A stretch of DNA of 64,000 nucleotides from Octopus bimaculoides (lineage: Eukaryota). Below the pieces are notes generated by a model that saw nothing but the letters and a program-made list of their open reading frames with translations, was not told the origin of the DNA and ran no database searches. Both the position numbers and the translations under genes were made by a program. This document shows positions 2,442 to 39,727 of this stretch, in pieces. Where the stretch lies: contig NC_068984.1 in assembly GCF_001194135.2 (NCBI RefSeq), positions 108,352,207 to 108,416,206 of the forward strand, read 5' to 3'. Position 1 is the stretch's first letter. Each line of letters begins with the position of its first letter.

Positions 2442-5549
<3,108 letters not shown>

Positions 5550-8390: not shown

Positions 8391-9376
8391 TTAAAAAATT
8401 AATGTTTTAGGTTTGCTTTTTTCTCTATATTTATAAATACTGAATAATAAGTTTTTTTTAAAAATTACTTCATTGGGGCTTTGACAATGAGAGGAGTATC
8501 AAACTGACAGAAAAAAAAAATGCACTACTCATAGGAAACACTGTTCAGGGTTAAGTCAGGAAACAGGATTTTGTTTTAAAAAGCCTACTCAAGACATAAA
8601 AAGAGCATCATTGTCATCATTTTAATGACCACTTTTCCATGCTTGCATGGTCCAAACAAGATTTGTTGAGGAATCGCTTCTATGACCAGATGCCCTTCCT
8701 GTCACCAACCCTTATCTGTTTCAAAGCAAGGTAATATTTCCCTATGACCAGACATGTTTATCACATGCCTGGTCATACAAGCAATGTTGTTCACTTGTAT
8801 GAAGGTCATATTTACCACCATACCATGTCAAAACAAGGCTACACACAAATGCATACATCCATATTTCATGTTCCATCTAACAAAATCCACTCAAAAGGCT
8901 TCAGTTGGACCAGGGCTATAGAAAACACTTGCCCAAGATGCTGTACAGTGGGATTCAACCTGACACCACATGGCTGGGAAACAAGCTTCTTAACCACACA
9001 GCTACACCTGCACCTACCATGGCCATATCTGTGCCTAACAGAAACCAATGACAAAAACTTTCATTGTAAAATGTCTTGTGGACATACATCGTCATTTATT
9101 AACATCTGTTTTTCCATGCTGGAATGGGCTGGATGGTTTAGCCAGAGATGGCAAGTTGCACCAGGATCCAGTCTGATTAGACTTGGCTTCTGCGGCTGGA
9201 TGCCCTTACTAACGCCAACCTGTGCTGGGTGCTTTAGACGTGATGAAAAATATTTCTGAACCAGCACCCAATGATGGGTTTAGCAACAGCATATAGTATT
9301 AGCTTACTGCATCATTTCAAATACCTAAGATATCCACCACACCTTAAGGATTACCAAAACAAACAAATAAACTAAC

Positions 9377-9757
9377 CTGTCAAAGGAAGTAGATTTCCAG
9401 ACAAAATCCACAACAAAGTTGAGTGTACACTCCACTGGCACACCAGCATTACTTTTCAGTTCAATGGCAACCTCGTCGCTATAATTATCAGGAATCTTAA
9501 TAACATGTCCAACACCAGACCAAGGCTTGTGCAATTCTCCCAGGTAACGCAGCCGCAGTTCATCACCATGCATCAGCTTCATCTCTTCATTAGCTTTTGG
9601 AAGGCGGAAGTAGGCAATTCTCTTCTTATTAAGGCCAACATCCCAACGGACAACGATATTATCCTGAGTCTGAGATTCTTTCAGTTTCTTGTCATAATCA
9701 GCTTCCAGCTTGACCAAAGGACCAAATATATTCTGATACTGATAGGCATCGTCGTAA
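9377..9757 (-). CDS. UPF1: UPF1 coding exon 7 ([22 protein letters not shown]...VWKSTSFDR; stalk and 1B domain)
   Basis: Acceptor ttttcttag|, donor AG|GTTAGT; 381 nt. Confidence 0.97.
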
Positions 9758-9905
9758 CTAAGAAAAGAGAAATTAAAACATATTAGGTTTACTTTAACTG
9801 TCACTCTCAAACCAAGTTTATACATTTCTGAAAACATCAATCTCATTCACATGTACCATAGAACACTAGATTTTTATACATGCACACACACACACACACT
9901 TAGTA

Positions 9906-10142
9906 AAAGAGAAATATTCATCAACAAAATAAATCACAATTAGTCTTAAGACACTTTCCATTAAAAATGCTTGACAAATGATCATATGTATATATATATA
10001 TATATCATCATCGTCGTTTAATGTCCGCTTTCCATGCTAGCATGGATTGGATGATTTGACTGAGGACTGGTGGACCAGGAGGNNNNNNNNNNNNNNNNNN
10101 NNNNNNNNNNNNNNNNNNNNNNNNNNNNNNNNNNNNNNNNNN

Positions 10143-10178
<36 letters not shown>

Positions 10179-11145
10179 TACACATTGCCATAATGCCAAT
10201 TACCTACATCAATGGAATGATGGGATACAGGGGTAAGAGTAGAATGGAGTAAACAGAAGACAAATGGAGTATTTACATTTGAGATTTGTGTAAAAAAAAA
10301 CTTCCATATGTCTTTCTGCTGAACTGCCTTTAGGCAGGTGATAGCACTGTCTTCCCAAGGATGTTTTAAAGTTTTTTTTTTTGTCAGGGTTTGAACCAAT
10401 ACACACTGTCTGCTGTTGAATCATCATCATCATTTAATGTCTGTTGTCCATGCTGGCATAGGTTGAACAGTTTGACCAGGGCTGGTAAGCTAAGGGGTCT
10501 GCACCAAATTCCAGTCTGATTTGGCAGGATTTCTACAGCTGGATGTAATGGATGCTTTTGCATGCCACCAACACAGGTGCCAGTTGCATGACACCAGTAT
10601 TTGCCATGACTGATACTAGTGTCACGCAACTGGCACCTGTGCTGGTGGCATGCAAAAGCACCCATTATACTCTCGGAGTGGTTGGCGCTAGGAAGGGCAC
10701 CCAGCCGTAGAAACCATGCCAAATCAAACTGAAGTCTGGTGCAGCCCCTTTAGCTTACCAGCTCTGGTCAAACTGTTCAACCCATGCCAACCTGGACAAC
10801 GGACATTAAATGAGGATGTTTCAACAGCAGACACTGTGTATTGGTCCAAACCCTGACAAAAAAAAAAAAAAAATTTTAAACATCCATGAGAAGACAGTGT
10901 TACCACCTTCCTAACTTGGCTAAAGGCAGAGTTCAGCAGAAAAACATATGGAAGTTTTTTTCTGCTAAGACACTATTTGTGTGTATGTGTATTCAGACAT
11001 ACACACTCATCTCAAATGTAATTAGACACCATTTGTCTTCTGTTTACCCCATTCTGCTCTTACCCCTATATCTCACTATTCCATTCCATTGATGTAATTG
11101 GCATTATGGTAATATGTGTATGTGTGTATGCATATAGTGCGTGTA

Positions 11146-11199
<54 letters not shown>

Positions 11200-11296
11200 T
11201 ATACACAGACATACATATATGAGCATTTGTTAAGCTCATGAAAAATATGTTAAGACTAATTGTGATTTATCTTGTTAAGGAAGAATATTTTTCTTT
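9906..11296. repeat. Long diverged inverted duplication (quasi-palindrome) centred at 10601-10612
   Basis: The arms align by eye from the 12-nt loop outward to 9906 and 11296, with indels. Confidence 0.9.
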
Positions 11297-12414
11297 CACA
11301 TGTACCATAGGACACTAGATTTTACACACACAGACCTTTGGAAATATGCCATACTTGACATATTGCCAAAAGTCTTGGTAATTTGTCATTGCCTCCATGT
11401 GGCCTGATGCTTGACAGGTGTTTTTTACATGCCACCAGTACAGGTGCTAGTTATGCAACACTGGTATCAGCCACATTGCCTCTGTAAGGCTCAACACTCA
11501 AAAGGTGCTTTTTACATGCCACACCTATGTTTATCAAGAATAGTAAATCTAGGAGGATTTTTGTTGCGACATAAAATTTACACAATATACACACACACAC
11601 TGGTGGTGGACGTGGAGCAGTTTGTGCCAATGTGTAAATAAGAGAAATAAGCACAAAACGAGAAAACAATAACAGATAGAAAAAAATGTGCAATTTTCCT
11701 TTCCTTTCATCAGCTGTCTAAACAGAATTTTCAGTTTTGAAGTTAAGGACAGGATTGCAATATCCCTAGCTGTATCAACACCTATGTATAAGGTTAAGGA
11801 TTGATCCAATGAAGACGAGACAAAGAAGACAAGAGGAAAAATATTTAAGCAGTGGGACAGAGACAAACACCAAAGATCAGACAGACACACTTGACATGCA
11901 AATATATAGATAAGTGTAAGAGACAGGGACAACTCAGAACACACAAAATACAGCTAAGTCTGAGTGACTAGGACAAAGAAAAGAAAAAATATATTAATTC
12001 CTTTCAATCCCAAAACCCCACAACAACAGGTGTTTTTGATGCAAGAAGGAAAATAACAAAATAGACATTGGTCTTAAATGAACAAAAAATAGCAAAAGAG
12101 TAAAGAAAGGCTTGCAGGTGCTAGGCAAGTCACAACAGAGGTATACAAAAACAATACATATACATACATAAAATTCCAGCAGTGTCAACATTTCTAACAC
12201 TGCTCATGAATTTTCACTGCATCAGTTAAGGGAGTTAGCTGATGTTAAGCAATAAAATTTGAATAGTATTTTGCCTGAACCTTCTTAGTTTTCACTTTAT
12301 AAACATGTAGATATGTACGACCAGCAAAATTTATAACACTCTCCTTTCCAACAAAATGGAGTTCAATGGCTTGCTACAATCCTATTGGTATTCAATAGAA
12401 ATAAACTGAATTAC

Positions 12415-12488
12415 CGTAAAAGAACTTGCTGAGGTTCTTCATCGACTCCAGGTTTTTCCAAATCTTCCAGTTTAGCCTCAGGATTTTC
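12415..12488 (-). CDS. UPF1: UPF1 coding exon 6 (ENPEAKLEDLEKPGVDEEPQQVLLR)
   Basis: Found by reading; acceptor ttatttag|, donor CG|GTAATT; conserved LEDLEKPGVDEEP. Confidence 0.96.
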
Positions 12489-13636
12489 CTAATAAGATCA
12501 TAAATTCAATATAACCATTTTCACAACAGAAACTGGTATAAATATTTTAACGAGGGAAACAACTAAATTCTTCCACAATTACAAAACTCAATCAAAAATT
12601 TTCCTCTATTACATAATGATTTTTTTTTTTTTTTACTTTTACAATGAAAGAATTACATGTTATTGCTGAAACATTCGCTGTCTCAATGCCTCCCCCCCAC
12701 ACACACAGTGTAACAGTAGCTCAGATATAAGTAACAAGCAGCTCTTAATACCCTGATTCAATGTTACAAAACTTCTCATTTTAACCCTTTTGATACCAAC
12801 CTGCCTGAAATCACCTCTGGTTCAATGGTACAAAATTCCAGTTTTAAAGTGATCTAAATTAAAACTTTCCATATTAATTTATGTTCTAAACACTAACTTA
12901 ATAATGATAAAGGTATTTCACAAATTTTCTTTTTTTTGTTATTTACACCTGTAAAGAGTGTATTCTACTAACAGTGGAAAAAAAAAAGACTCGAAGTCTT
13001 GAAAAAGTGTCACAATTTTATAATACACATACATCTACTCACAGGAAGTATACATGAATAACTTATGTATCATTTGACTTTCTCAATCAGTTAATTCTTT
13101 TCATATCTACCCACCTCACAAAACCACCCTCAATTCTATAAAACATACTTTGAAGTGAACTAGATTAAGAACTCCCATCAAAATTCCATGTTAATGTATG
13201 TTCTAAACACCAGCTTAATAATAATACAGATATTTAAATTCTTAATTTTTTATCCCTCAAAACTAATTGAAACAAAGTTTATATTTTTAACAGGAATATG
13301 TTAATAGAAGAGGTTAATGATAAAATATACTGAAAAAGATTTGAATCTAATTTCAAATAATTTATAGTGGATGTTACTTAATAAAACTGTATTCCAAACA
13401 ATAATAGTTATTCATTAAACGATACAGAATATCACTGAGCTATTACTGAAAACCAACAGAAATAAAATTTCTTGGCCATATTTTCAATATAGTTAAATTT
13501 AATCAAATATAAACTTGCATTCTCATAGTTAAAATTCGAAGACGAAAACTTTAAGAAACAGTTCTCTAAGGAAAGAAAAAACAACAATAAAAAAAAAACT
13601 GAATTGCAAAATCATATAGATAATATAAGACAATAC

Positions 13637-13775
13637 CTTCCAGAGCTCTTCCAGTTTATTAATTTGCTGGGCAGATATCTGACGAGCTCTCAATTGTTCT
13701 TGGTCCGATGGAACTTTTACAAGCCAAGAGAGAAATTGTCGATCTTGGATGAGGGGCTGCCACTGACTTGGATCC
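13637..13775 (-). CDS. UPF1: UPF1 coding exon 5 ([20 protein letters not shown]...INKLEELWK)
   Basis: Acceptor tgcag|, donor AAG|GTATTG. Confidence 0.97.
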
Positions 13776-14302
13776 CTGCACAAAAGAAATAATGTTCTTT
13801 GATAATTTCTTAAATTGGTACACCATAAAAGTAACCTAAATATATATTATGGTACATATTTTATAGATTCTGGAAAGATAAACTGTAAAGTGATTTAACT
13901 TAGAACAGAGGATGAAACTATGTAGGTATAAGGGCTATATAAGTTAAGACAGTGCTGGTTATGCCAATTCAATACCCTACCAATCATTAATATCAACTAT
14001 TTGTAGTGGCTCAAATCTACAAGTTTGCAGAGAAGTGCTGCAGTTAATTGAATAAATACCAATTCTTGACTAGCCCATATTTCATCAACACTAGAAGCAA
14101 GAAAGAAGTCAACCCCAGTAAAATCTGATAGAGAAAGCTAAATACTGAATGATGTTTATAGTCAGACTCTGGAAATTCACCGGCATTCATTCTTCACAGT
14201 AACAGCATCCAAATTATAACTCCAATTTAGAATTGGACTTGTATGTATGTGTATACATATATATGTGTATATATATATTTGTGTGTGTGTGTGTATACAT
14301 AC

Positions 14303-14353
<51 letters not shown>

Positions 14354-14884
14354 ATAAAATCTATAAAAGTCATAGTTGTTCTAACATTCACTTTTCTAAG
14401 TTTGCATGAGTCAGACTAAATTTGTTGTGGCAAAGTTTCTATGGCTGGATGCTCTTCCTGCTGCTAACGCTCACCTCTTTCTAAAACACATTTTCACAAA
14501 AGGTTGAAAACAAAGGACAGCTTGTATGACAATGATGTTCATTTACAGCTATCACACAATATCAAAGCAAAGAGACAGTAAAACACACACACACACACAC
14601 AGAGGCTTCCTTCAATTTCCATCAACCAAATCACCCACAAGGCTTTGGTTGGCCCAAGGCTATAGAAGACACTTGGTTATAGTGCCTTGCAGTGGGACTG
14701 AACCTGAAACCATCTAGTTGAGAAGCAAACTTAAAACACACAGCCATGCCTGCGCATAACTAAAGGTTTTGCATACAAAGCCTAGGTTTCTCAAGCAATC
14801 ATTCATCTAAGTGCTAACTAGACTAACTTTGATGATCAGACGAGAACTGGTTTTTTTAAAGATATATATATATATACACACATA

Positions 14885-16370
14885 CAGTGTCTCACAGAAG
14901 TATGTAGACCCCTAAAAAATTTCAGTAAAACAGTCATTAATCTGATAATATTGAAGGAAATCAAATGAAATTTATACTGAATAGAATATATTATACATGC
15001 AAACATTATACAAATTTGGAACACAAAAACATTTTCAAGGATATGAATGAATGAAATATTAATTTTCAAACGATACAAAGATATGTTAACCCTAATCTAT
15101 TATTTGCTATATTCAATATTTGGTGCAACCACCCTTGCTTTCAATGACTGCATTAAGACTTGTGGGCATAGAGTCGACTAAATTTCCGCATATAACCGAT
15201 GAAATCAACCTCCATTTATCCTGAATGATGTCTTTCAACTGTGTTATATTGTAGGATTTTTTCTTCTCAACCTTCCTTTTCAAAACACTCCACAGATATT
15301 CTACTGGGTTTAGATCAGGTGACATGGTAGGCCAAGGCAATACCCTTACCTTTTAAGGGTCATTACCATGTAATGTCTTCCTAGTTCCTTGATGCTTTTC
15401 AACATTGTTTTTTGCAATATGTCACAATAAAGCCTTGAATCCATTGTTCTCTCAATAAATGTGAGTCCTCCCATACCAGCAACACTCCTGCATCACCAAA
15501 GCATAACACTTCCGCTGCCATGTTTCACAGTAGGCACGGTGCATTTGTCACTATTATCTTCGTCTGGTCACCATACTTGTTTAATATCATCTGACCCAAA
15601 CAAATTGATTTTAATCTCGTCAGAAAAAAGAATTTCATTCCAAAACTCTTTCCCCTTACATACGTTTTTGTAAAAGATGACTTGATTTATGCCTGGTAGT
15701 GAGGAGAGGCTTCCTATGAGGAACTCATCCATGAAGACCACACTGGTTCAAACTTTGGTGAACTGTTTGGGCGGATACACTCTTCCCACTAACAGAAGAC
15801 ACTTCTTGGGCCAAAGATGAAGCAGTACAATGCTTGTCATCCATCACGCAACATTGGATGTGGCGAATATCACGCACAGTTAAAATAGGACAACTTGGAC
15901 AATGTTTATTGCTTAGCCGTCCAGTAGCTTTATACTTCTGAATTATTTTGGCAACTGTGTTTATGTTAATATGTATTCATTTGCTAATTAACATGTATCC
16001 TAAACCATTCTTGTGCAAATTAAAAATAATTTTCAAATCTTCAGACAATTCTTTTCCTTTTGATGCCATTTTAATCACAATGAAGATTTTCACCACAGTA
16101 CACAAATCAGAATTCCTGCAGATGCAGTAACTATGACCGGTGCAAAAATACCAGGAGAAATAGTTTATCAGAATTAAAATTATCAGCAACATCTGAATTT
16201 AATGAAAAAGGTGGATAAAATATTGAATATAGCAAATTTCCTTTAGGGTGTACATATTTTTGTAATGTTTGAAAATTAATATTTCGTTTATATCTTTGAA
16301 AATGTTCATTGAGTTCTAAATTTGTATAATGTTTGCATGTATAATATACTACATACTTCTGTGAGATACT
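14885..16370 (-). mobile_element. Tc1-family DNA transposon with long (about 150-230 bp) TIRs; transposase pseudogene 15113-16069
   Basis: MASKGKELSEDLK start; FSDEIKINLFG, TVKHGSGSVMLW and SPDLNPVEYLW motifs with stops. TIR end CAGT(G/A)TCTCACAGAAGTATGTA at both ends; TA on the left flank. Confidence 0.9.
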
Positions 16371-16613
16371 CTGTGTGTGTGTGTGTGTGTGTGTAAAATT
16401 AGAAAGTGAAACAATAAGGACATAATTAACAAGGCATAACTTAATCTCATTACTTCCACATAATGGTAAAAACATTAAATAGCTAGAAAAATGAAATATT
16501 TGACACCTATCAAAATTGTGACATAACATTTACTAATGCAGGACTTCCTAAAACTTAAAGAAATGGGAAATAAAATTCAACTTTGAGACTAAATGAATAT
16601 ATGTAAGTTGTTA

Positions 16614-16850
<237 letters not shown>

Positions 16851-17157
16851 TCAGACCAATAAGCATAATTTAAGAAATATTTATTTCAACATGCAATAAA
16901 ACAACCCAAATAATAATATCAAACACTGATCAGAATTAATTAAAAAAAAAATCTGACATAAGTTGGCTTGTTTTACATTTTGTTTTTAATGACATCTTTA
17001 ATGACAGCCATTATTCGACCATATAAAACTGAACAAAGACTAAATGAAGCAATTAACTTTTAAAAGAAAATCTATTTTTGACATAAAATGTTCGCAAACA
17101 GCGTTAGAAACCAAATTAAGATGGAGATTATTTTGTAACGTTATTGTAGAAATATCA

Positions 17158-17200
<43 letters not shown>

Positions 17201-17208
17201 GAACATAC

Positions 17209-17298
17209 CTTCCAGAGGTGTTGCCTCGTCCATTACAAAACCATTTCTTTGTGGTATTGCAGTACACAACACAGGCAGGATCATGAATTCCACAGTAC
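17209..17298 (-). CDS. UPF1: UPF1 coding exon 3 ([29 protein letters not shown]; CH domain)
   Basis: Acceptor ttctctag|, donor AG|GTATGT; near-identical to the UPF1 CH domain. Confidence 0.97.
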
Positions 17299-18249
17299 CT
17301 AGAGAAATATCGATTAATTATTTTAAAAACTGCTTTTCCTAACTCAACTGCATTAAATTTTCACACAATCTTTGCAAAACCAACTAGATTCTGTTTCTAT
17401 TTATCTTTTAAGCACAGAAATGTCAACTAGTGGTGCAGCTAATTTCTTGAAAGTCTATAAAAAAAATTAAAAAATCTATATTGACAATGACAGTGAACTT
17501 ACTACCATTTGAATAGGGAATCAATTTGGAATGTCAAACATTATTGTAGACATCATAACAAGAATTCAAGTATGAAAGAGGTTTAAAATAAGGTTGTGTA
17601 AGTTGATAAAACCCCTATTTAGCAAAAAAAGAATTTCCTTTCTTTAAAATAAGAACCCCCTTTGACAATGTCCAAAGTACATATAAAAGGTATTAGATAC
17701 CAAGGAAATGACTATGAACTGATGACAGCATGATTGGCCAGAAGGGCCAAGTATGTTTCCAACACCATAAGCAAGGCAAACCTGGAAAATGGGGGACCAA
17801 AATTTGGAAGTTGTGTGGGGAAAATACAAGGAAAAAAGGCAATTTAAGTCAGCATGACCTAAAAACGATGTGGTCTGGAAAATATTTCTGCCATACTGTA
17901 ACTAGAGCCATGTTATTTTCTGATCAGTTTTTCAGTTCAGTCAAATTTATGGTGGATTTAAAAGCTGTTGAAATTAAAAAATGCCATATTGAGGAGGGTG
18001 TGTGTGTGTGTGTGTGTGTGAAATAATTCAATGGCAGAAATTTGTTAGTAACTGCATACAGAAATAAGAGGCAAGTTAATTTTCTATCAACTTGTGCTCA
18101 AACCATATGTGGCTGAAAATAGCACACCATTTGCGAACCTGAATTATAACAGCTGCTTGGATAGTTATAGATCAGATAACTCAAATATTGTGCTATTATC
18201 TAGTTGGTAGACAAGAAAACAAGTTACGGCAATAACTGGTTTGGTAATG

Positions 18250-18250
<1 letters not shown>

Positions 18251-18325
<75 letters not shown>
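18251..18325. repeat. (TA)n microsatellite, representative of dozens of TA/CA/GA tracts
   Basis: Read directly. Confidence 0.95.
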
Positions 18326-18328
<3 letters not shown>

Positions 18329-18615
18329 TACTGTCAATGTGTGTTTACAATATATTAAATAAGGAGGAGCTCAAAAGCAATGTGACTATCTACAGTTCTG
18401 AGCAGAAGTAGTGGTGCAAATGAAGGTGGTGATGGTTAGGGGGAGGAAAAAAAAAAGGGCCAGGAATGCCAACATCTGAAAAGAAAGCTCTCATTGAATG
18501 GTTAACCAAAACTTCCCAATTTCGCAGTCTACAATGTTGAATTATGTAGAATGGGATGCTTTACAAGTTTCTACCACAGGAACATTAATTTGTGTGTGTG
18601 TGTGCGTAATAGGAA

Positions 18616-18973
18616 TTATTTTGGAAGAAGTTGAAAGAAACACAGTTTGAATGGATGATGCATCACAGAAATAACTGAGCGAAGAACAATTAGTTATGAA
18701 GATGGTCATATATTTAGTTGATCATGATGTTGTTACAATGATTCTAACTCGCACATGCAAAAAAACCCCCCAAAAAACATGAAACTAGAGAGTATTTTAC
18801 TGCGTAACATGTGTACACAAACAAATGATGTGACAACATTTTAATCTTATATTGTAATGACATTAAAATCAACTAAATAAATGGCTATCTTCGTAATTGT
18901 TCTTCACTCAGTTTCTCTGCATCATCATCATCATTCAAATTTCATTGTTACTTTTGATGTCTCTTCCAAATAA
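18616..18973. repeat. Degenerate inverted repeat / MITE-like element (arms about 130 bp)
   Basis: GATGATGC...AACTGAG(C/T)GAAGAACAATTA...GAAGAT..TCAT.TATTTAGTTGAT is present in inverted orientation on both sides. Confidence 0.7.
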
Positions 18974-21900
18974 AGCCATTACACACACACCATCATTTAA
19001 TGTGTTATTCATGTTGGCAATGGGTTGGACGGTTTGACCAGAGCTAGCAAGCTGCACCAGACTCCAGTCTGTTTTGGCATGGTCTCTACGGCTGGATGCC
19101 CTTCCTAATGCCAACCACTCCGAGGGTGCTTTTACGTGCCATCAGCACGGGTTTCATTTGTGTGACACTAGTATCTGCCATGACAGTGTTTTACTTGGCT
19201 TGATGGGTCTTCAAGCACAGCATAATGCCAAATGGACTTGGTCATTGCCTCTGTGAGGTCCAACGCTCGAAGCCTAGAATAATACCAAATGGTTTCAGTC
19301 CTTGCCTCCGTGAGGCCCAACACTCAAAAGGTGCTTTTATGTACCACCGGCACAGGTGCCATTTTACTTAGCTTGATGGGTCTTCTTCTCAAGCACAATA
19401 TAATGCCAAAGGTCTTGGCCATTGCCTCTGTGAGGCCCAATATTTGAAAGATCAGTCTCAGTCCTTGCCACACATATAAAATTTGATTTTATAAAACTTT
19501 TTAAAATCTAACTTGGTTTTGTTTAATGTGCGACTTATCTTAATGTACTTGTGACAAATTTTCATTTATTTATATTTGTGAATCATTGTGTGTTTGTTTG
19601 TGTGAATATTTCATTTTGTTATTGCTGTTGTATGAAACTATTTCATTTGTTTTCTTTCAACATAGATTCCAGTTTGTTTGCTTTTTTTTTTGTTCTATTT
19701 TACTTTTATGGTACATCGTTTCATACACATTCAATAACAAATAATTCTTCTATACTAAAATTCTGTTGCATATCCAGCTGAGTATTAGCATATAACTCAT
19801 TTTCTGGACTGTGGCCATGCTAGGGCACTATCTGAACAGTTTTCCAGTCAAGCAAGTCAGTTTCAGTACTTTTTATTATTTTTTTTATAAAGTCTGCAAT
19901 TTATTCTATCATTCTCTGTTGTCCAACTGCTAAGTAATAGGTACATATACAAACCAACACCAGCTGTCTGGGGAAAGGGGCACTGATACACACACATACA
20001 CACACACAGTTTCAAACTGTCAAATTCACTCACAAGGCATTGGTTAGTCTAGGGGCTGTAGAAGATGCCCAAGGTACCACAGTGGGGCAGTACCTGAAAT
20101 CATGTGGTTGCAAATCGAATTTCTTAACTACACAGCCATGCCTGTTTAAATTACTTTACATTTTGCTAAATTTAACTGTATTACAGGTAAATTGTATATA
20201 CCTGTAATTAGATTCACTTTGAGGGAAAAATTATGTAACAGATTTTTTAAGAAAACTTTTGTTACGATGTGTTCCAAAAACTATTTACATGTCAATAATT
20301 TTTTTTTTTAATTTATGAAACTTGTCAAAATTCAGGATTATTTTAGCATTTAACTGAAACATAGAATGTATTTTAGTTGGAAATATAGTAATGAAAGGGT
20401 TAAATACCATTTGAGGAATTTTTAGCAAATTTCACATTAATTTAATATTAAACTGGTTTACTTTTCTCAACACAGTAATAAATATGCAGCCAACACCTAG
20501 CCAGAGGTGAAGATTGCATTTTATAATGACTAAATACAAAACTAAAATTATTTTTAAAGATAACTGTAGCAGGCAAAAACTAAGATCATTTTTGAGCGTA
20601 GTGCTAAAAAATACATTAACAAAATATTCAAATAAAACATATGTTAGAGATAATATAAATTATCCTTTTCAGATTTTGATGCAAAGCATTATGCTATGAT
20701 TATAATGTGTAATAATACACACATAGCAGATGCAGTTTGGTAGAATGGTTTAGTCTGCTTCAACCACAAAGCCAGAGGTTTGACTCCACTGTGTTGGGGT
20801 GACCAATGCCTTGCAAGTGAAATTGAGTAGACAGAACCTGTATAGATGGCTGCCAGATGGAGTGAACTTGTAATTCAAAAGGTAGGCCTTGTCACACACT
20901 GTCATGTTGCATCTGCCTAAAAATTATGTTAAGGATACATGTGTTTGTGGAATGACAACTGGATGCCCATCCTGTCAATAAACTTCACCTGTTTCCAAGT
21001 AAGGTAATATTGCCCCATGGCCAGACATATTTTAACAAAAGATTGAAAACAAAGGATACTTGTATGAAGGTAATGGTCATTTATAACTATCTCATGTCAA
21101 GACAAGGAGACAATAAGACACACACATAAACATACAAGACTTCAGTTTCCATTTACCAAAGGGTTTGGACTGCCTGGGGTTATAGCAAAAAATGCTTGCC
21201 CATGTACCATACAATGGAACTGAACTAGAAACAGAAGTTCCAATTGCAAATATCATAAATTCCTAAAATGCTTACATAGAAGGAATAAAAAATATGCAAC
21301 AGATAACAGATTACAGCATTTACTAAATATTCTAACAAATGAAGTAACACAAATTAAAACGATGCTTTGAGAATTAGTTAAAACTACAAAAACATTCTGA
21401 AAATTTTTCAAACACAGAAGAGATAGTTTAAAAAAATTCTATATCTGTTTCTTCTTATACAATAATTGTCTCAACTCTTTAGAATCTTGTAGTGTTTTGT
21501 CTATATAAATCTCAATCCTGTTAAATACAAGGTTTTGATGAAATACAGTTAATTCAGCATAAGAAACATAAAAAGCATAAAATTGCTTGAATTTGGATGA
21601 AACTTACTGGTATGATGTAATAATTGCAAAAGTGGCCTTCACTTGTCATACCACTTTCACCTGTCCAGATAAGCTGAATACAGGTAAGTTGATCACGACA
21701 TGTAGGTGTTTTTACATACACTTGCAAGCTATAACTTTCTGGTTATTGATTTATTGTCCAAAAGCTGAATGTGTGTTTCAGTAGTTTCTGAAACTTGGAA
21801 GCTACAAAACTAGCATCAGAAAAAAGGATTCACAAATATGCCTTTATCTGCTCTGATGCCCTGCTGAAGTGTTTACCATGTAACCCCATTGTTCAATCTG

Positions 21901-23418
21901 ACAAACATTTCTTCAGGAAAAAGTTGGAGAAAATACTCAACAGGCTTTCATTCTATGTTCAAAGGCTTTGTCTGGTCTATATCACTAATGGAAACACTGA
22001 TGCAAAGATCAACTACATGATCACACCACAGCTGCCAAAAAAACCAATTAGTCCCAATATCACTAAGATCACAGGTGTATAGAGATGACATAGAAATATC
22101 ATTCATTTTCTCTAAGTTCAAGACTTCTCTCTATTTAAATCATTAATAAATGATAAATTAACAAACTGTGGTTCTAGCACAGAAATGTGCTTCACTATCA
22201 TTTTAATATCCACTTTTCCATGCTCACATGAGCTTGACAGAATTTGTTGAGGATGATTTTCCAGAGCTGGATGCCTTTCCTGTTACCAACCGTCATCTGT
22301 TTCCAAGAAAGGTAACATTTTCCCATGACCAGACATTTTCGCAAAATACTGGAAATAAAGGACACTGCTTAGATTATGATGACACTCATTACAACTACCT
22401 CATGGTGCCAAGATAAGAGACAGTAGTGCACACACATCATCATCATTCAATGACCATGTTCCAGGCTGGAATGGGCTGGAACTAACATGTTCAAAGATTG
22501 GATTATTCTCCAATGTCTGCTTTGGCATGGTTTCTATAGCTGGATGTTTTTTCTAGTACTAACCACTTTCCAGCGTGGACTGGATGCTTTTTTTCATGCC
22601 ACCTACCCCATTGAGGTTGGTATGCAGTCAGGAGGACTACAAACACTTGGGGTGGTAGTGGGAGACAAGGGGGGGTCAACTTCATGCAAGGAGATGAAGG
22701 GATTACTATGAGAAGGAAAGGAGAGAGTAAGTTCTTGAGGGATCTGCGTAGCGACTCATATCTAGTAAAGGAAACGGGGGAGGGAAAAAGATAAAATGAT
22801 TTGTAGAAGCTGCAAGAGATATATACATACACACATGAGTTTCTTTCAGTTTGTCTAGCAAATCCACTCAAAAGGGATGGTCAGTCTAGCGCTATTGTTA
22901 AAGACACTTGCCCAAAGTTTCAAGCAGTGAAAGTGAACCTGAAACCCATACAGCCACAGTTTAGTTCCTATTTTTCAAACCCGAACAACACCATTTCAAT
23001 TCAGATTACAAGTGGCTCAAAACTAAACAGTTACAGTTACTTGCAATACAAAACTTTAAAAGTTAAGCAGCAAAGGAAACAACTCTATAATCAAGAATGG
23101 AGAAGAGTTGGGTAAAATCCTGCAATACTATACACTTGCTTTTATTTAGCACTGTCAGTCCTGATTCTGCTGACTTACAGTAAAAGACATTCAAACCTGG
23201 ACCATCCAAAATACTTTTTCAGGCAATGTACTTTGCACTCCCATTATCCAGGTGTACTTTCCCTTTTTAACCCTGTTGATACTAATCCGCCTGAAACAAC
23301 CCTTTGTTCTATGATAGAAGATTTCTGCCTTAAAGTGATTTAAATAAAAGCCTTCCAGTAAAAATTTTATTAGTTTATGCTTTAACACTTTTGTTACTAT
23401 ATTTATAACAAACATACT

Positions 23419-23678
23419 ACTGGTTCTTGTGTGGGTGGCACATAAACTACACCATTTTGAGCGTGGCCGTTGCCAGTACCACCTGACTGGCCTTCGTGCC
23501 GGTGGCACGTAAAAGCACCCACTACACTCTCGGAGTGATTGGCGTTAGGAAGGGCATCCAGCTGTAGAAACTCTGCCATATCAGATTGGAGCCTGGTGTA
23601 GCCATCTGGTTTCACCAGTCCTCAGTCAAATCGTCCAACCCATGCTAGCATGGAAAGCGGACGTTAAACGATGATGAT
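23419..23678 (+). mobile_element. Retroposon family B (core AGGAAGGGCATCCAGCTGTAGAAA, tail GGACGTTAAACGATGATGAT), young copy
   Basis: Many related copies (about 6560, 10004, 10420, 19000, 22440, 45168); a simple-repeat 3' tail indicates retroposition. Confidence 0.75.
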
Positions 23679-24129
23679 ACTTGTTTTTTTTTAATTATAT
23701 TTGAAAATAATGAAGAATATATTAAAATAACTATCATTATTAAGCAATTGTTTGAAATCTGAATTTACATGAAATTTTGATGGTAGGTTTTAATTGAGAT
23801 CACCTTGAAACAGGGAATTTAAATGAACCAAGGGTGGTTTTAGGTAGGTTAGTATTGAGAGGGTTAAACGCCAGCTTGATCATAAGAGAAGTTATTTTAA
23901 TAATTATTATTTTCAAAATTAATTTTTAAAAAAGCAGTGTATTTCAATAGAAATATGGTAACCAAAAAGTTAAGATATTAGGATGTGGTGTGACTGCTAA
24001 TTTTAGCAGGAGTTGGGCAACAGATTGGAACACTCAATTTCAACTAAACAGGACCACTTAAGTATTCAAGGAAGAGGAATAAGCAACTAAGGAAATTAAA
24101 CAGTTTAAGATAAAAAGACGAATACTCAC

Positions 24130-24269
24130 GCGCAAGCATGCTTTGGTAAGTCCTTCATATAAAACTGTTCTTCCTCATCTTCTTCAAAATTGAGCTCACC
24201 AACACCTTGGTTGATTGCTCCCACGTTTTTATCCAGTCCATTCTGAAATGGTCCTTCAAGAACATCAAT
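24130..24269 (-). CDS. UPF1: UPF1 coding exon 2 (IDVLEGPFQNG...ELNFEEDEEEQFYMKDLPKHAC)
   Basis: Missing from the ORF track and found by reading. Acceptor tttttatag|, donor GC|GTGAGT; conserved LNFEEDEE...DLP.HAC motif. Confidence 0.95.
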
Positions 24270-25817
24270 CTATAAAAAAGAAGAAATTGCTTCATTAAAT
24301 TCAGGAGAAAGCCATCAAATATTTGTACCTAATAACAAAGTGCATGAGCTGAGATCAGACATATGTACAAAAGAAAAGATTTGTTTATGCATTTCCCCAA
24401 AAATATTAGCAATTGGGTCATTGTACAGTAAGAAAGAGCCAATACTCCATGGAGTTAGACATTTTTCAAAATGGTCAGTTTAGCTTCCTCTTTCTTGGTT
24501 TCATTATTTCACAATGTGTCCATGCTGACACAGAAAACATACAGTATAAATGTTCTACTATAGCTTAACATTTAACTGTGAAGAAGAAATGAATTCCAGT
24601 TTGGCATCCAAGCAAACTGAAGCAAACAGAGATAGGCATTTTACTAAGGATTCCATTATAATCATTAAAGTCAAGGATTATAGTGTAACACTCACAGTCA
24701 TTATGCCTCTATCTAGATAACTATAGTCTATGGCCAACCAATGCCATGTGAGTGAATCTGATAGATGGAAACTGTGCAGAAGGGTGGCATACATAAGTTA
24801 CAAAGGATTTTGAAATCCAGAAAATTACTTCAAGCAGCAGTCCTGAAAACAGTGGCTACCAGAATGTAATGGAAGGAAAATTTGTTCAGTAGAAAGAAAC
24901 ATTAGTTTCACACAACATTAGTGAAACAATGATAAACCATGGAATAGACATAAGACTAACTCCATTCTTCACTTGTTTTCATATAAACGAAAAGAACGTG
25001 GGTATAACTTGGTACTCCTTTATTCCAGTTGGTACATATGTCTCAGTATTCAGCATGCAACTTCTAGGGCCAGAGTGGAGCAAACACAAAGTCAGATAAT
25101 CAAGAAAGAAAGACAAGTTAAAGATAAACAGCAACCAAATTTAAAAACACTGTAGGCACATGTCAGAGGAGAAGGGCGGATCGAGGAGGTAATGTAGGTC
25201 AAATCAACTGACATAACCTGAGTGGAATGATGTCTGTAAGGGTAGGGGTTTAGGTTGCCTTTATACGACCACATGAGGGGAGAGAAATAATAGCTGGTAA
25301 GATAAAAGGGTACAATAAACCTCTAAGAGTTGACACTGTCAGAGTCTCTCCCAAAATGTCCAGTTAGTAACCAACCCACTACACCCATGTGTGCATGAAC
25401 ATATGCTTACATACACATGATTAACATTAGAGCTGAAATTTATGTGATTTAATTGTCATGCACTGAGCACATCCAATCATTATACACACACACACACACA
25501 CATATATACACACACACACACACATACATACATACATGTCTGGTTAAGAAGCTTGCGCCCAACCTTGTGGTTTTAGGTTCAGTCCTTTCAATCCCAGTAC
25601 ACAGCATCTCAAATGTCTTCTACTGTAGCTTTGTGAGAGGATCAGGTAGACAGCAATTGAAAGAGCACCATCATATACATATCTAGTTGTTGCACACAAT
25701 GATGGCAAGATTGCAGANNNNNNNNNNNNNNNNNNNNNNNNNNNNNNNNNNNNNNNNNNNNNNNNNNNNNNNNNNNNNNNNNNNNNNNNNNNNNNNNNNN
25801 NNNNNNNNNNNNNNNNN

Positions 25818-27100
25818 TGAAAACGACCAAATGAGATTTATTTTCCAACAAAGTCTTTCCTGCAGTCGACATACTTATTCCATTGGTGTTGCAATGTTTG
25901 GATACCATTGGTGAAAAAAGCTCTCATCCTGTTGGTCAAAGAAGTTTTCAACAGCAGATATGTCATCATCACTGCGATACTGGTTCCCAGCCAAGTGTTT
26001 TTTCATGTTGAGGAACAGATGACAGCCAGATGAGACTAAATCAGGAGAATAAGGAGAGTGATCAACCAGTTCAAGTCCATAATCCTGCACAGCAGCCATT
26101 GAAACCAAGAACTTGAGTGCCAGAGCATTGTCCTTAAGAAAGAAAACCTCTATCATCAGTTTTCCTGGGTGTTTGGTCTTGATAGCCTTTCGTAACCACC
26201 TCAGCAAGTTGGCATAGTACTTTCTATTGATATGTGGCCCTTTTGAAAATAGTCAACAAACAATGCCTTTTGTATCTGAAAAGGTAGAGGCCATCAACTT
26301 CCTTGCAGATGAAATGACCTTTGCTTTCTTTGGATCAGGTGAGAAGGGGCGTTTCCACTGCATGGATCTGCCTCAATGTGCAACTTTCCTGGTATGCTTT
26401 GATCAAGTGTCAGAAGATGTGGCACCCACTGAGCAGAAGTCTTCATCGTGTCACATTCATTGCACAGAATATTCTCAACTCTCTCACAGAATATGCTAAT
26501 AGCACTAGCTATTTGACTTATAGTCAGCTGCTTGCCATCCCTCAGCATGCAGTGAACACGATCAATGATATCCTTGGTGGTAGCAGTTGCTGGACACCCA
26601 GACCTTGGGTCATCTTCAAAACTCTCTCTTCCCCCCACAAAATTCAACTGCCCACTTTTGCACTTTCTTTTTTTTTTTTTACTTGTTTCAGTCATTTGAC
26701 TGTGGCCATGCTGGAGCACCGCCTTTAGTCGAGTAAATCAACCCCAGGACTTATTCTTTGTAAGCCTAGTACTTATTCTATCAGTTGTCTTTTGCCGGAC
26801 CGCTAAGTTACGGGGACGTAAACACACTAACATCGGTTGTCAAGCGATGTTGGTGGGGGGACACATATACATATATACGACGGGCTTCTGTTGATAAAGC
26901 TGAAGTATCATCCCTTAATGTAGCAACCGTATCAGCATGACTGTCCTTGGGGGCTAAGCCCTTTTCCTGCAGGTACTTGATAACACCACAATGCCAAATT
27001 TTGTTCATTTTCAAGAGCATTTTCTACTAGTTACTTTTGAAGTCTTCTTTGAACAACCAAATGTCAGTTTAGATGGAAAGAAAACGCAGCTATTAATAAG
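25818..27100 (-). mobile_element. Mariner transposase relic interrupted by a SINE (26676-26885)
   Basis: N-terminal VIKYLQEKGLAPKDSHAD; FEDDPRSG and WVPHLL; C-terminal HSPYSPDL motif; frameshifted. Confidence 0.85.
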
Positions 27101-27293: not shown

Positions 27294-28094
27294 ATTTGGT
27301 TTGGGGTTAAAAGTTCAAAGAGGACTAAACCTTTCATATCCCACCAAATAGATAACAACACCTTACATGGGTGAAGGCCTTCTTTAGCCTGGGGTGCCGG
27401 TGTTTCTCCTTTCCCTACCCACTGTCTTCAGTGCTTGACATTTCTATAGAGAACCCATTTCTCCTCACTAGTCACTATTCGATCCAAAAAAGGTTTATTC
27501 AGGAGACATGACAGCAAAAAAGAGCACACATTCACTCTCTACGTGTCATTAGACCCAAAAAGTTTGTGAGGAAGCCACTGATACAATTTGCTGACTTTTC
27601 CGATGGCACACAGGTGTCGATGAATGGTTGAATAACCAAATCCAAACTTCTCTGCTAGTTCCTTAACAGTTACAATGGGATTTTCTTTCACCAGGGTTTG
27701 CAGGATGTCCTCGTTGAGCTCGACAGATCTTCCAGGATGAGGCTCATCTTCAAGGCTGTAGCATCTAGCTCTGAATTTCTGGAACCACTGTTGACACTGG
27801 GTTATGCTTATTGTCCAATCCCCATATACTGCATTAATATTCCTCGCACTTTCCATTGCGCTGTTGCATTCAAACCCAAAGCAAAATATGCCAAATATGT
27901 TCCTTTGTCATTTCCATTACAGCCTTGAAAATACAACTTAAAATCGAACTCTCTTCAAAACTTGCACTAAGAATAAGTACAAGGTAAATTTAATACCTGC
28001 TTTTATAGCAATTTGATGCAGGTAGTTTATCCTGACCTTCTCCGACTTAGCTCATGCAATTGAAAAAAATCACATTATTTACAGGTTGACCTAA
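27294..28094 (-). mobile_element. Second, distinct mariner element, 3'-truncated at the gap/microsatellite
   Basis: LEDEPHPGRS, WLPHKL, RIVTSEEKWVLY and IWWDMKG motifs; terminus TTAGGTCAACCTGTAAATAATG flanked by TA at 28095-28096. Confidence 0.85.
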
Positions 28095-35756: not shown

Positions 35757-36122
35757 TGTTGGCACTCCGTCGCTTACAATGTCGAGGGTTCCAGTCGATC
35801 CGATCAACGGAACAGCCTGCTCATGAAATTAATGTGCAAGTGGCTGAGCACTCCACAGACACGTGTACCCTTAACGTAGTTCTCAGGGATATTCAGCATG
35901 ACACAGTGTGACAAGGCTGACCCTTTGAATTACAGGCACAACAGAAACAGGAAGTAAGAGTGAGAGAAAGTTGTGGTGAAAGAGTACAGCAGGGTTCGCC
36001 ACCATCCCCTGCCGGAGCCTTGTGGAGCTTTAGGTGTTTTCGCTCAATAAACACTCACAACACCCGGTCTGGGAATCGAAACCGCGAGTCCGCTGCCCTA
36101 ACCACTGGGCCATTGCACCTCC
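35757..36122 (-). mobile_element. SINE family A copy
   Basis: Near-identical to the 31123 copy, with a short deletion in the tRNA-like head. Confidence 0.85.
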
Positions 36123-38521: not shown

Positions 38522-38744
38522 TGTTGTTGGCACTCCATCGCTTACGACGACGAGGGTTCCAGTTGATCTGATCAACGGAACAGCCTGCTCGTGAAATTAA
38601 CGTGCAGTGGCTGAGCACTCCACAGACACGTGTACCCTTAGAGTAGTTCTCGGGGATATTCAGCGTGACAAGGCTTACCCTTTGAATTACAGGCACAACA
38701 GAAACAGGAAGTAAGAGTGAGAGAAAGTTGTGGTGAAAGAGTAC
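38522..38744 (-). mobile_element. SINE family A, 3' part (head in the gap)
   Basis: Matches the other family A copies up to the N-gap. Confidence 0.8.
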
Positions 38745-39273
38745 NNNNNNNNNNNNNNNNNNNNNNNNNNNNNNNNNNNNNNNNNNNNNNNNNNNNNNNN
38801 NNNNNNNNNNNNNNNNNNNNNNNNNNNNNNNNNNNNNNNNNNNNNNNNNNNNNNNNNNNNNNNNNNNNNNNNNNNNNNNNNNNNNNNNNNNNNNNNNNNN
38901 NNNNNNNNNNNNNNNNNNNNNNNNNNNNNNNNNNNNNNNNNNNNNNNNNNNNNNNNNNNNNNNNNNNNNNNNNNNNNNNNNNNNNNNNNNNNNNNNNNNN
39001 NNNNNNNNNNNNNNNNNNNNNNNNNNNNNNNNNNNNNNNNNNNNNNNNNNNNNNNNNNNNNNNNNNNNNNNNNNNNNNNNNNNNNNNNNNNNNNNNNNNN
39101 NNNNNNNNNNNNNNNNNNNNNNNNNNNNNNNNNNNNNNNNNNNNNNNNNNNNNNNNNNNNNNNNNNNNNNNNNNNNNNNNNNNNNNNNNNNNNNNNNNNN
39201 NNNNNNNNNNNNNNNNNNNNNNNNNNNNNNNNNNNNNNNNNNNNNNNNNNNNNNNNNNNNNNNNNNNNNNNNN

Positions 39274-39552: not shown

Positions 39553-39727
39553 TTTTTCATTCCACAGATACATATCTGCTAATCTATTTGTTTACTGGAG
39601 AATATAAATAATGCTATTGTTTTTTGTTTAGATAGTATGAAGACTCACAAAATTGACATTTACATGTGTGTTTGTGCATGCATGCACATATATGTTTATA
39701 TGTATGTCTAAGTGTATATATCTTTTA

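Follow-up and report, generated by a model that had tools for sequence, protein, structure and literature searches.

Replication by template switching produces reverse-complement repeats and hairpins (PMC5453318, PMC8794818), and the junctions of fold-back rearrangements show inverted microhomology of 2-8 bp (PMC3907307). Edited double-stranded RNA (dsRNA) in metazoans conventionally arises where inverted repeats that lie close together pair (PMC9989829). In Octopus, editing occurs mostly in introns and 3'UTRs, at hairpins, and intronic hairpins are generic ADAR substrates (PMC9699675).

Here, we describe a foldback palindrome of ~1.4 kb in the gene for the nonsense-mediated decay (NMD) helicase UPF1, found in a stretch of octopus DNA of 64 kb (the window, i.e. 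the whole stretch that was analysed). Long inverted repeats that are transcribed as a single hairpin are also known from the Drosophila hpRNA loci, which are stand-alone units with arms derived from their target gene and with Dicer-2-dependent 21-nt RNAs. The UPF1 foldback shares features with each of these systems, and most likely, if not securely, it is a relic of serial template switching.

The host intron and the inverted arms

UPF1 is a minus-strand gene in the window. Using a UPF1 probe (tblastn), we found 12 colinear exons with 57-97% identity, and the matches include GPPGTGKT and DESTQ. The exons run in the order CH zinc-knuckle domain, 1B domain, and helicase motifs I and II, which identifies the gene as UPF1 / RENT1. 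Corroborating this, the database entries matched by the translated exons bear the name regulator of nonsense transcripts 1 and contain PF09416, PF18141, PF13086 and PF13087, and PF18141 is also listed for the orthologous exon 7 ORF (P0240) in the protein search with the exon 7 ORF. The matches listed in two protein searches with the translated exons included no full-length cephalopod UPF1; the second of these queries was padded with a human C-terminus and served as a probe only. Exact look-ups of three ORFs of the window, including one that spans the palindrome centre, gave no match.

The exon 6 donor GT is at 12414-12413, and exon 7 begins at 9757 after an AG acceptor. The foldback makes up 53% of the intron between them (Table 1), and 146 nt separate the exon 7 acceptor from the outer end of the left arm upstream of it. 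Exon mapping and splice sites thus agree with an earlier note, made by reading the sequence, which had placed the palindrome in UPF1 intron 6 at ~150 nt from exon 7.

Table 1. Features of the UPF1 intron 6 foldback and its surroundings (window coordinates)
Feature	Position	Strand	Basis
UPF1 exon 7 (ends ...STSFDR)	9373-9757	-	tblastn, 76% to human probe
UPF1 intron 6, 2657 nt	9758-12414	-	Splice sites read; split codon CG/T = Arg restores ...LLRYDDAYQ
DR1, putative original sequence just upstream of left arm	9843-9918		Local alignment; same place in contig L001
Left arm, read as the original copy; 3' arm of the predicted transcript hairpin	9903-10600		Repeat search, blastn, gapped arm alignment
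Younger SINE-like insertion, left arm only, holds gap 10083-10142	10004-10142	-	92-94% identity to 45172-45246, 23613-23678
Older SINE-like element, 3' two-thirds (tail, body, first head unit)	10420-10612	-	Multiple alignment with 6 other window copies
Loop and symmetry axis TTGCCATGACTG, junction 1	10601-10612		From the 12-nt quasi-palindrome of the SINE-like element itself
Right arm, read as the inverted copy of 9903-10600; 5' arm of the predicted transcript hairpin	10613-11299		Repeat search, blastn, gapped arm alignment; SINE-like copy cut exactly at axis
Whole putative templated insertion, 734 nt (right arm and DR2)	10613-11346		Excision restores the SINE-like element
DR2, direct copy of 9843-~9918	11292-11346		Local alignment; overlaps right-arm end by 8 nt
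Older SINE-like element, 5' remainder, split off by the insertion	11347-11530	-	Alignment to intact copy
UPF1 exon 6, encodes ENPEAKLEDLEKPGVDEEPQQVLL and CG of an Arg codon	12415-12488	-	tblastn; AG acceptor and GT donor read

The inverted repeat is far beyond chance. All strings that had been quoted as its arms were located (left, 10552-10600; right, 10613-10661), separated by the 12-nt loop, and the arms also match at GGGTTTGAACCAATACAC (10388-10405 vs 10837-10854), CTTCCATATG (10301-10310 vs 10946-10955) and ATAAATCACAATTAGTCTTAA (9929-9949 vs 11250-11270). A repeat search resolved the arms into colinear inverted blocks of 55-121 nt with 87-97% complementarity. Similarly, blastn aligned 10163-11136 inverted to itself (691 bits, E = 0) and 9903-10005 to 11299-11199. 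With the gapped arm alignment in agreement as well, the palindrome of ~1.4 kb is real, and 10613-11299 is the reverse complement of the nearby segment 9903-10600.

In the gapped alignment, the arms are 89.0% identical (K2P 0.121, 517 reliable columns) and differ by 38 transitions, 19 transversions and 18 indels of 2-68 nt. The arm-specific differences include a 30-nt deletion, by which the SINE-like copy of the left arm is short relative to that of the right arm and to the family. With ~11-12% divergence and this number of indels, the arms fit the description of the foldback as an old duplication. The same description had the arms run through unique sequence, which holds for most of their length but not for the inner third: the non-SINE arm sequence gave no further blastn match within the 64-kb window, whereas the inner ~190-206 nt of each arm belong to a dispersed SINE-like family, of which the window has at least 6 other copies.

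A second, younger SINE-like element landed in a (TA)n run of the left arm, which resumes at 10143; the gapped alignment shows the right arm without it. This insertion holds an assembly gap, which lies in non-coding intron, where the reading frame is no issue. For a full-length insertion, the true gap would probably exceed 60 nt.

A protein search with the ORF of exon 7 and the intron-encoded ends of that ORF yielded a contig of another octopod (Logan contig L001, 902 nt) that has the same order as here: exon 7, 85 nt of intron, DR1 and then ~100 nt from the outer left arm. The contig breaks in a different repeat inside the left arm, short of the inner arm, and so covers the outer left arm only. 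As to the presence of the palindrome in other octopods, which had been proposed as a check, this species has the outer left-arm end at the same place, and the contig ends before the inner arm. The left side appears to be the ancestral single-copy sequence. Divergence between the arms is 11%, compared with 13-16% in the orthologous intron sequence of the two octopods, and the counts in a three-way alignment (left-only ~8, right-only ~8, outgroup-only ~5) are compatible with a duplication either before or after the split. The duplication may be roughly as old as the split from that octopod.

Junctions and a proposed origin by serial template switching

The palindrome interrupts an older SINE-like element, whose 3' part has its (GAT)n tail at 10420. 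When the insert is taken out, 10418-10612 and 11347-11530 are colinear with an intact copy of the element at 18985-19350 (84% identity, no gap at the joint). Hence, the two halves abut and no flanking sequence was lost. The SINE-like copy of the left arm continues through the loop and resumes precisely at 11347. In comparison, the copy of the right arm stops at the axis without an upstream continuation, for which reason we rejected the right arm as the original. The left arm, then, reads as the original copy and the right arm as the inverted copy. The axis itself falls in the middle of CATG, and its counterpart in the intact SINE-like copy is the quasi-palindrome CTGCCATGACAG (19175-19186).

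The second junction is at the outer end of the right arm, where DR2 begins. Local alignment of DR1 with DR2 scored 61, against a shuffle maximum of 29. The first 8 nt of DR1, TCATTCAC (9843-9850), are the inverted complement of the start of the left arm, GTAAAAGA (9903-9910), and the two make up a short inverted repeat that is interrupted by a spacer of 52 nt. The overlap of DR2 with the right arm, TCTTTCAC, is the microhomology of junction 2 and is identical to TCATTCAC at seven of its eight nt. The putative switch points thus lie at a quasi-palindrome (junction 1) and at short inverted homology (junction 2). In the three-way alignment with L001, DR2 has the outgroup state at both sites of the 32-nt core at which DR1 has diverged.

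We consider it probable that one local replication error left the foldback behind, as a neutral by-product of serial template switching and not as a purpose-built element. Before the event, UPF1 intron 6 would have held a single SINE-like retroposon, antisense on the plus strand. The nascent strand would have reached the 12-nt quasi-palindrome CTGCCATGACAG of this element and switched to the complementary template, from which ~700 nt would have been copied backwards to give the right arm. A second switch, at the 8-nt inverted microhomology TCTTTCAC / GTGAAAGA, would have been followed by the copying of ~55-75 nt forwards from 9843, giving DR2, before synthesis returned to the exact base of its departure. 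The net product would have been the 734-nt insertion at 10613-11346 and a near-perfect palindrome with ~700-nt arms. By the arm comparison, the arms later diverged by ~11-12% and gained indels of 2-39 nt and the 30-nt deletion, and the left arm took the younger SINE-like insertion. We infer the origin from the junction anatomy, whereas the later history is read directly from the comparison of the arms; the hairpin described below is computed, and its consequences are expectations. The proposed detour is reconstructed from one genome after ~12% divergence, so that its switch points and microhomologies are uncertain by a few bases.

A history in two steps fits equally well. A full inverted triplication would have come first, and most of its third copy would then have been deleted. 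Counting against the proposed detour, the third junction, at the return to the SINE-like element, has at most 1-2 nt of microhomology.

Repair of a break is an unlikely source of the same structure. A double-strand break in the SINE-like element would have been resected, its 3' end would have snapped back on the quasi-palindrome and primed its own extension, and the product would have been sealed after templated synthesis. Short inverted homology together with a templated inverted insert is indeed also reported for fold-back repair (PMC3907307, PMC11724301); in yeast, however, the templated inverted insertions documented at breaks mostly have a length of ~5-34 bp (PMC11724301), and large fold-back events lead to dicentric chromosomes and terminal deletions (PMC3907307). 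The UPF1 intron gained 734 nt, lost nothing from its flanks and has an exact return point, which is better fitted by a replicative detour, although break repair and fork switching are inseparable by sequence alone.

The predicted RNA hairpin and the remaining explanations

UPF1 is transcribed from the minus strand, and each of its pre-mRNAs thus contains both arms. We folded the transcript strand with the N run removed (ViennaRNA) and used 25 dinucleotide shuffles as the control. The predicted fold has -796.6 kcal/mol, compared with -348.6 ± 8.8 kcal/mol for the shuffles (z = -51), and 491 base pairs cross the axis, so homologous segments of opposite orientation, both within intron 6, are predicted to pair in one transcript. 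This prediction agrees with the very long imperfect hairpin that the earlier note had proposed for the UPF1 pre-mRNA. The longest predicted helices of the transcript strand are unbroken over 55, 34, 34, 28, 27 and 27 bp, whereas those of the plus strand are shorter (37, 21, 21, 19, 19 and 18 bp). In the pre-mRNA, the imperfect hairpin would have ~490 bp and would end ~125-145 nt before the exon 7 acceptor, leaving the usual region of the branch point and polypyrimidine tract unpaired.

An Rfam scan of 9000-12600 gave sub-threshold matches only. We rejected the strongest of them, mir-297 and mir-466, as genes since they occur on both strands over a (TG)n(TA)n(CA)n microsatellite at 11129-11217. 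ARAGORN found no tRNA.

The stability of the fold and its closeness to the exon 7 acceptor raise the question of a regulatory hairpin, i.e. dsRNA that is maintained, with ADAR editing, dsRNA-binding proteins or Dicer tuning exon 7 splicing or UPF1 abundance, a link of dsRNA processing to UPF1 that the earlier note had suggested. We regard this as quite unlikely. In its favor, apart from the stability and position of the hairpin, the helices are longer on the transcript strand than on the plus strand, and 27 of the 38 arm transitions still allow pairing as G·U in the transcript, compared with 11 on the other strand (p = 0.014). Control repeat copies of the same gene are symmetric at 41:41, and the arms differ from them at Fisher p = 0.047, a comparison for which these controls are imperfect, part of their differences predating the insertion of these copies. 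This bias is marginal and post hoc, and it comes from 38 sites. The sense strand of the window has a G+T excess (51.7%), and in view of transcription-associated mutation asymmetry, such an excess favors exactly the changes that are compatible with G·U pairs, which counts against selection as the source of the bias. An explanation by mutational strand asymmetry was nevertheless not borne out by the controls from the same gene, which are symmetric. The excess of G·U-compatible transitions is the sole hint of constraint, a marginal one that the controls leave unexplained.

The remaining evidence points away from regulation. We find no sign of strong constraint on the hairpin because arm divergence is near the level of the orthologous intron, i.e. 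near the neutral intron rate, and because the arms have 18 indels and large bulges (25-39 nt) and a repeat of at least 139 nt was later inserted. Moreover, the predicted hairpin ends outside the usual branch point and polypyrimidine tract region, and several other pairs of inverted repeats (130-280 nt) are in the same transcription unit. Octopus editing very rarely changes splice sites (PMC9699675), and the literature searched held no link between UPF1 and cephalopod editing. The predicted hairpin is a textbook ADAR substrate, as are the other inverted repeat pairs in UPF1. By analogy with the inverted repeat pairs of other animals and the intronic hairpins of Octopus, ADAR would probably hyper-edit the duplex, which would then be lost with the intron, and the hairpin most likely has little or no effect on UPF1 output. 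We read the foldback as an ordinary neutral relic.

Weak RNA-level selection on the hairpin is, in our judgment, very unlikely. Under this reading, the excess of G·U-compatible changes would exist because long intronic dsRNA is maintained, and the dsRNA, through ADAR hyper-editing, nuclear retention or Dicer, would couple dsRNA handling to UPF1 output. If true, a regulatory loop born of a single replication error would act on the core NMD helicase.

It is highly improbable that 9900-11291 is a mobile element, either a foldback transposon or one with long terminal inverted repeats. A direct repeat around a block of inverted repeats superficially resembles the layout of a DNA transposon, but such transposons make target-site duplications far shorter than 55-75 nt. 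We rejected the flanking direct repeat as a target-site duplication, whether of a transposon or of retroposition: in place of a fixed short duplication there is a repeat of 55-75 nt that overlaps the arm end by 8 nt, there is no tail at either end, and removal of the insertion restores the host SINE-like element. The non-SINE part of the arms is without a second copy in the 64 kb, the arms hold an ordinary SINE-like insertion and microsatellites and not terminal sub-repeats, and a transposase remnant is absent. Transposition would also need the 3'-truncated retroposon fragment after DR2 to continue the left-arm fragment base for base, which is very unlikely.

An assembly artefact, with arms that are mis-joined haplotypes or a chimeric mirror join, is scarcely credible despite the eight runs of N in the window, one of them inside the left arm. 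On either side of this gap, the sequence follows the gap-free right arm in order and orientation; the part to its left matches the outer end of the right arm and adjoins exon 7 in the other octopod too. The palindrome centre is within one contig, with the axis, 458 nt of the inner left arm and all of the right arm in the gap-free stretch 10143-25717. Mirror artefacts have identical arms, whereas these differ by 11% and by 18 indels, among them a 30-nt deletion and a repeat insertion; the earlier note, too, had argued from the divergence of the arms.

Comparison with described systems

By our reading, the foldback provides a clean, base-resolved natural case in which one replication detour gave a very long predicted RNA hairpin in an essential gene, and such a hairpin can last for roughly the time since two octopod species split. 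For work on cephalopod RNA editing, the foldback is a predicted hot spot of hyper-editing in UPF1 pre-mRNA. Annotators need not treat the palindrome and the scaffold gap at this locus as assembly errors. Alone, the foldback reveals no new kind of regulation.

Of the pairings of dsRNA in pre-mRNA, inverted SINE pairs that serve as ADAR substrates (human Alu pairs, PMC526178; PMC9989829; PMC9699675) also have repeat copies of opposite orientation in one pre-mRNA. Unlike those pairs, which are independent insertions, the foldback has one insertion that was apparently duplicated together with ~500 nt of flanking intron. Its duplex is ~3 times longer than that of a repeat pair and is known here from sequence and the predicted fold. 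Like the Drosophila hpRNA loci, the foldback puts both arms of a long inverted repeat into one hairpin transcript; however, within the 64-kb window the arms match only the local host intron and the dispersed repeat.

ODIRA-type inverted triplications (PMC10766183) have a direct copy, an inverted copy and the start of a direct copy in the same order as the foldback, which also has the short interrupted inverted repeat described for them (8-nt arms 9843-9850/9903-9910 with a 52-nt spacer, and the 12-nt quasi-palindrome at the axis). In contrast to ODIRA, the third copy in the foldback is only 55-75 nt (9843-~9918 to 11292-11346) and was truncated or never completed, and the unit is 0.7 kb of intron and not kilobases with an origin and a selected gene. 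The human DUP-TRP/INV-DUP structure has a comparable direct-inverted-direct order.

Template-switch mutations (the four-point model of Löytynoja and Goldman, PMC5453318; PMC8794818; FoSTeS/MMBIR-type) insert an adjacent reverse-complement copy, as here. They have in common with the foldback junctions at a quasi-palindrome or microhomology, a return to the departure point and a ready-made hairpin. Published short-range switches span tens of bases, whereas the foldback would have required ~700 nt copied backwards and a direct detour of 55-75 nt, and its template switching is read from an old, diverged product and not observed.

The foldback in UPF1 intron 6

A human UPF1 sequence, used as a probe solely to locate exons, matched 12 colinear exons on the minus strand of the window, including GPPGTGKT at ~7190 and DESTQ at ~430. 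In a database search, the proteins that matched the translated exons were named regulator of nonsense transcripts 1 and contain PF09416, PF18141, PF13086 and PF13087. The codon CGT, split as CG and T across the exon 6/exon 7 junction, restores ...LLRYDDAYQ. Hence, the end of exon 6 and the start of exon 7 define intron 6 (table), and the foldback (9903-11299) makes up 53% of it. Its end lies 146 nt upstream of the acceptor, so the earlier note placed it correctly, ~150 nt before exon 7; each string quoted there was also present at its coordinates within 9700-11600.

An inverted-repeat search resolved the region into a colinear set of inverted blocks. In a blastn search of the window with this region as query, 10163-11136 self-aligns in reverse (691 bits) and 9903-10005 aligns with 11299-11199. 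The left arm (9903-10600) and the reverse-complemented right arm (10613-11299), aligned globally with gaps, are 89.0% identical over 517 reliably aligned columns, with 38 transitions, 19 transversions and 18 indels (K2P distance 0.121). With the N run taken out, the transcript strand has a predicted folding energy of -796.6 kcal/mol, compared with -348.6±8.8 across 25 dinucleotide shuffles (z = -51); 491 pairs cross the axis, in helices that reach 55, 34, 34, 28, 27 and 27 bp for the six longest. Hence, the palindrome pairs far above chance level.

The assembly gap at 10083-10142 falls within the intron, so reading frame is irrelevant to it. On its left side the sequence is complementary to the outermost right arm and on its right side to the remainder, both in correct order and orientation, and this pairing supports the scaffold join. 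The axis, the inner left arm and the complete right arm share one N-free stretch. A mirror artefact or haplotype duplication is ruled out by the 11% arm divergence and the many indels; the earlier note had argued against a mirrored artefact from transitions and arm-specific indels, and had called the duplication old.

Features of the foldback and of UPF1 in the window (strand - is minus)
Feature	Position	Strand	Identity	Remark
UPF1 exon 6	12488-12415	-		GT directly after
UPF1 exon 7	start 9757	-		preceded by ...ttttcttag
UPF1 intron 6	9758-12414	-		2657 nt
Inverted block	10546-10600 / 10613-10667		93%	55 nt
Inverted block	10425-10545 / 10698-10818		87%	121 nt
Inverted block	10372-10430 / 10810-10868		93%	
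Inverted block	10294-10325 / 10930-10961		97%	
Inverted block	10211-10270 / 11026-11085		88%	
Inverted block	9917-9961 / 11238-11282		84%	
5' part of SINE-like element	11347-11530			orientation as left-arm copy; directly after the second direct-repeat copy
Inverted pair	35757-36034 / 39274-39549		94%	first large UPF1 intron
Inverted pair	38517-38744 / 39321-39557		87%	first large UPF1 intron
Inverted pair	28814-29054 / 30715-30965			first large UPF1 intron
Inverted pair	40448-40631 / 40908-41094			first large UPF1 intron
Inverted pair, 136 nt	14987-15121 / 16218-16348		85%	UPF1 intron
DDE_3 match	15116-15352	-		ORF remnant between the 136-nt pair
HTH_Tnp_Tc3_2 match	15728-15976	-		ORF remnant between the 136-nt pair
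RVT_1 reverse transcriptase remnant	4893-5342	-		E = 2.6e-13, UPF1 intron
Integrase zinc-finger match, weak	3849-4055	-		UPF1 intron
Mos1-type HTH	27542-27907	-		E = 4.7e-9, UPF1 intron
Mariner DDE fragment, weak	25878-26252	-		UPF1 intron

Anatomy and origin of the insertion

A dispersed repeat with a (GAT)n tail makes up the innermost 190-206 nt of each arm and recurs at 6555, 9087, 18987, 23496, 37865 and 45172. We call it SINE-like solely for its dispersed copies and tail; a tRNA-like head was searched for in the repeat and not found. Its 5' region (11387-11522) holds tandem sub-repeats ~87 nt apart (…AGGTG(C/T)TTTTTACATGCCAC…), which vary in number among copies: the one at 18985-19350 is a unit shorter than the copy here.

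Both arm copies have their tail-to-flank junction in common; hence, a single insertion was duplicated along with ~500 nt of intron flank. No further copy of this flank was found in the window by blastn, so the earlier description of the arms as unique sequence holds for the flank and fails for the inner, dispersed part. The symmetry axis lies within a quasi-palindrome of the repeat (TTGCCATGACTG in the foldback, CTGCCATGACAG at 19175-19186 in an intact copy); the left-arm copy runs through the loop (10601-10612), and the right-arm copy ends at it. Outside the arms is a direct repeat (9843-~9918 vs 11292-~11346, score 61, shuffle maximum 29), whose first 8 nt (TCATTCAC / TCTTTCAC) overlap the final 8 nt of the right arm and are the inverted complement of the left-arm start (GTAAAAGA).

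When 10418-10612 and 11347-11530 are joined, they are colinear with the intact copy at 18985-19350 (84% identity), with no gap at the joint (...CATGACTG followed by TGCCATACTTG vs ...CATGACAG followed by TGTTTTACTTGG in the intact copy). Hence, 10613-11346 is a clean 734-nt insertion splitting a once-continuous element; by alignment, it comprises 9903-10600 in inverted orientation and, after that, 9843-~9918 in direct orientation.

As the simplest reading of this insertion, we infer a replicative detour with three switches. Synthesis would have moved at the quasi-palindrome to the complementary template, then at an 8-nt inverted microhomology onto the forward template again, at a site 60 nt upstream from the inverted copy's end, and finally to precisely the base where it had left; the second junction has 8-nt arms and spans 68 nt. 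Template-switch mutations produce reverse-complement repeats and hairpins (PMC5453318, PMC8794818), and the foldback origin fits their published logic. Alternatively, a full inverted triplication may have lost most of its third copy in a second step, or a break may have undergone fold-back repair (PMC3907307, PMC11724301). A transposon with a target-site duplication was rejected on the grounds that the direct repeat overlaps an arm and is too long, that the window holds no further copies, and that the host repeat is regained base for base without the insert. The foldback is a real, old duplication with a well-resolved origin.

Age and later history

After the duplication, the left arm lost 30 nt of the repeat body, with right-arm 10668-10697 unpartnered. 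More indels then built up in the arms, among them right-arm segments of 39, 25 and 9 nt that lack left-arm partners, and a younger SINE-like element inserted in the left arm. Its tail end, the 79 nt before the gap (10004-10082), is 92-94% identical to copies at 45172 and 23613; the element sits within a (TA)n run, which continues directly after the gap, and is absent from the right arm.

Using the exon 7 ORF together with its intron-encoded ends as query, we found a match (P0240, 93% identity) on a Logan contig of 902 nt (sample SRR11869391), which evidently comes from another octopod. The contig carries exon 7 (4.4% divergent from the window), an 85-nt intron stub, the first direct-repeat copy (9843-~9918), a (CA)n run and ~100 nt of outer left arm, ordered as in the window, then enters a different repeat and ends. 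Of the palindrome, which the earlier note wished to see in other species, the outer left arm is thus in place there, and the contig stops inside that arm.

In a three-way comparison over ~140 nt, private changes numbered ~8 in the left copy, ~8 in the right copy and ~5 in the other species, and orthologous intron divergence is 13-16% vs 11% between the arms. Together, these values would make the duplication roughly as old as the split from that species. At 1-40 the contig has a different dispersed repeat (…GGCTTCTTTCAGTTTCC…) where the window has the (TA)n run and the younger insertion, so the left-arm microsatellite looks like a recurrent insertion site.

Pairing in the UPF1 pre-mRNA

From the modelled fold, the UPF1 pre-mRNA should form an imperfect hairpin of ~490 bp. 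Its predicted base lies ~125-145 nt before the exon 7 acceptor, leaving the usual branch point and polypyrimidine tract region unpaired.

Of the 38 arm transitions, 27 are compatible with G·U pairing on the transcript strand and 11 on its complement (p = 0.014); as a control, private transitions split 41:41 in six repeat copies in the same gene (Fisher p = 0.047). Polarised by the repeat consensus, 8/12 transitions are sense-strand C-to-T. This bias, found post hoc and marginal, is the sole hint of RNA-level constraint on the foldback, and nothing further is concluded from it. It could stem from chance, from strand-asymmetric mutation or from weak selection on pairing; the UPF1 sense strand has a G+T excess of 51.7% across the window (GC skew ~+0.033, TA skew ~+0.035). 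Skews of such size are known in mammalian genes and are ascribed to transcription-associated mutation asymmetry.

Four inverted pairs in the first large UPF1 intron (190-280 nt, 71-94% identity, 0.3-3.2 kb apart) are predicted additional dsRNA-forming sites in the pre-mRNA. One partner among them adjoins the assembly gap at 38745-39273. With its terminal repeats and ORF remnants, 14987-16348 reads as a decayed Tc1/mariner DNA transposon of ~1.36 kb. At 11129-11217 and 10141-10195, sub-threshold Rfam matches (mir-297, mir-466 and similar families) occur on both strands; a microRNA gene was rejected, since these matches are compositional and overlap a palindromic (TG)n(TA)n(CA)n microsatellite.

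In Octopus, ADAR acts mainly on such hairpins in introns, and splice sites are rarely changed by editing (PMC9699675); across metazoans, dsRNA conventionally arises from inverted repeats that lie near each other (PMC9989829). The UPF1 foldback would be expected to serve as an ADAR substrate, and its hairpin is the largest among the UPF1 inverted pairs and the same in kind. It belongs to known kinds, as a template-switch inverted duplication and as intronic inverted-repeat dsRNA.
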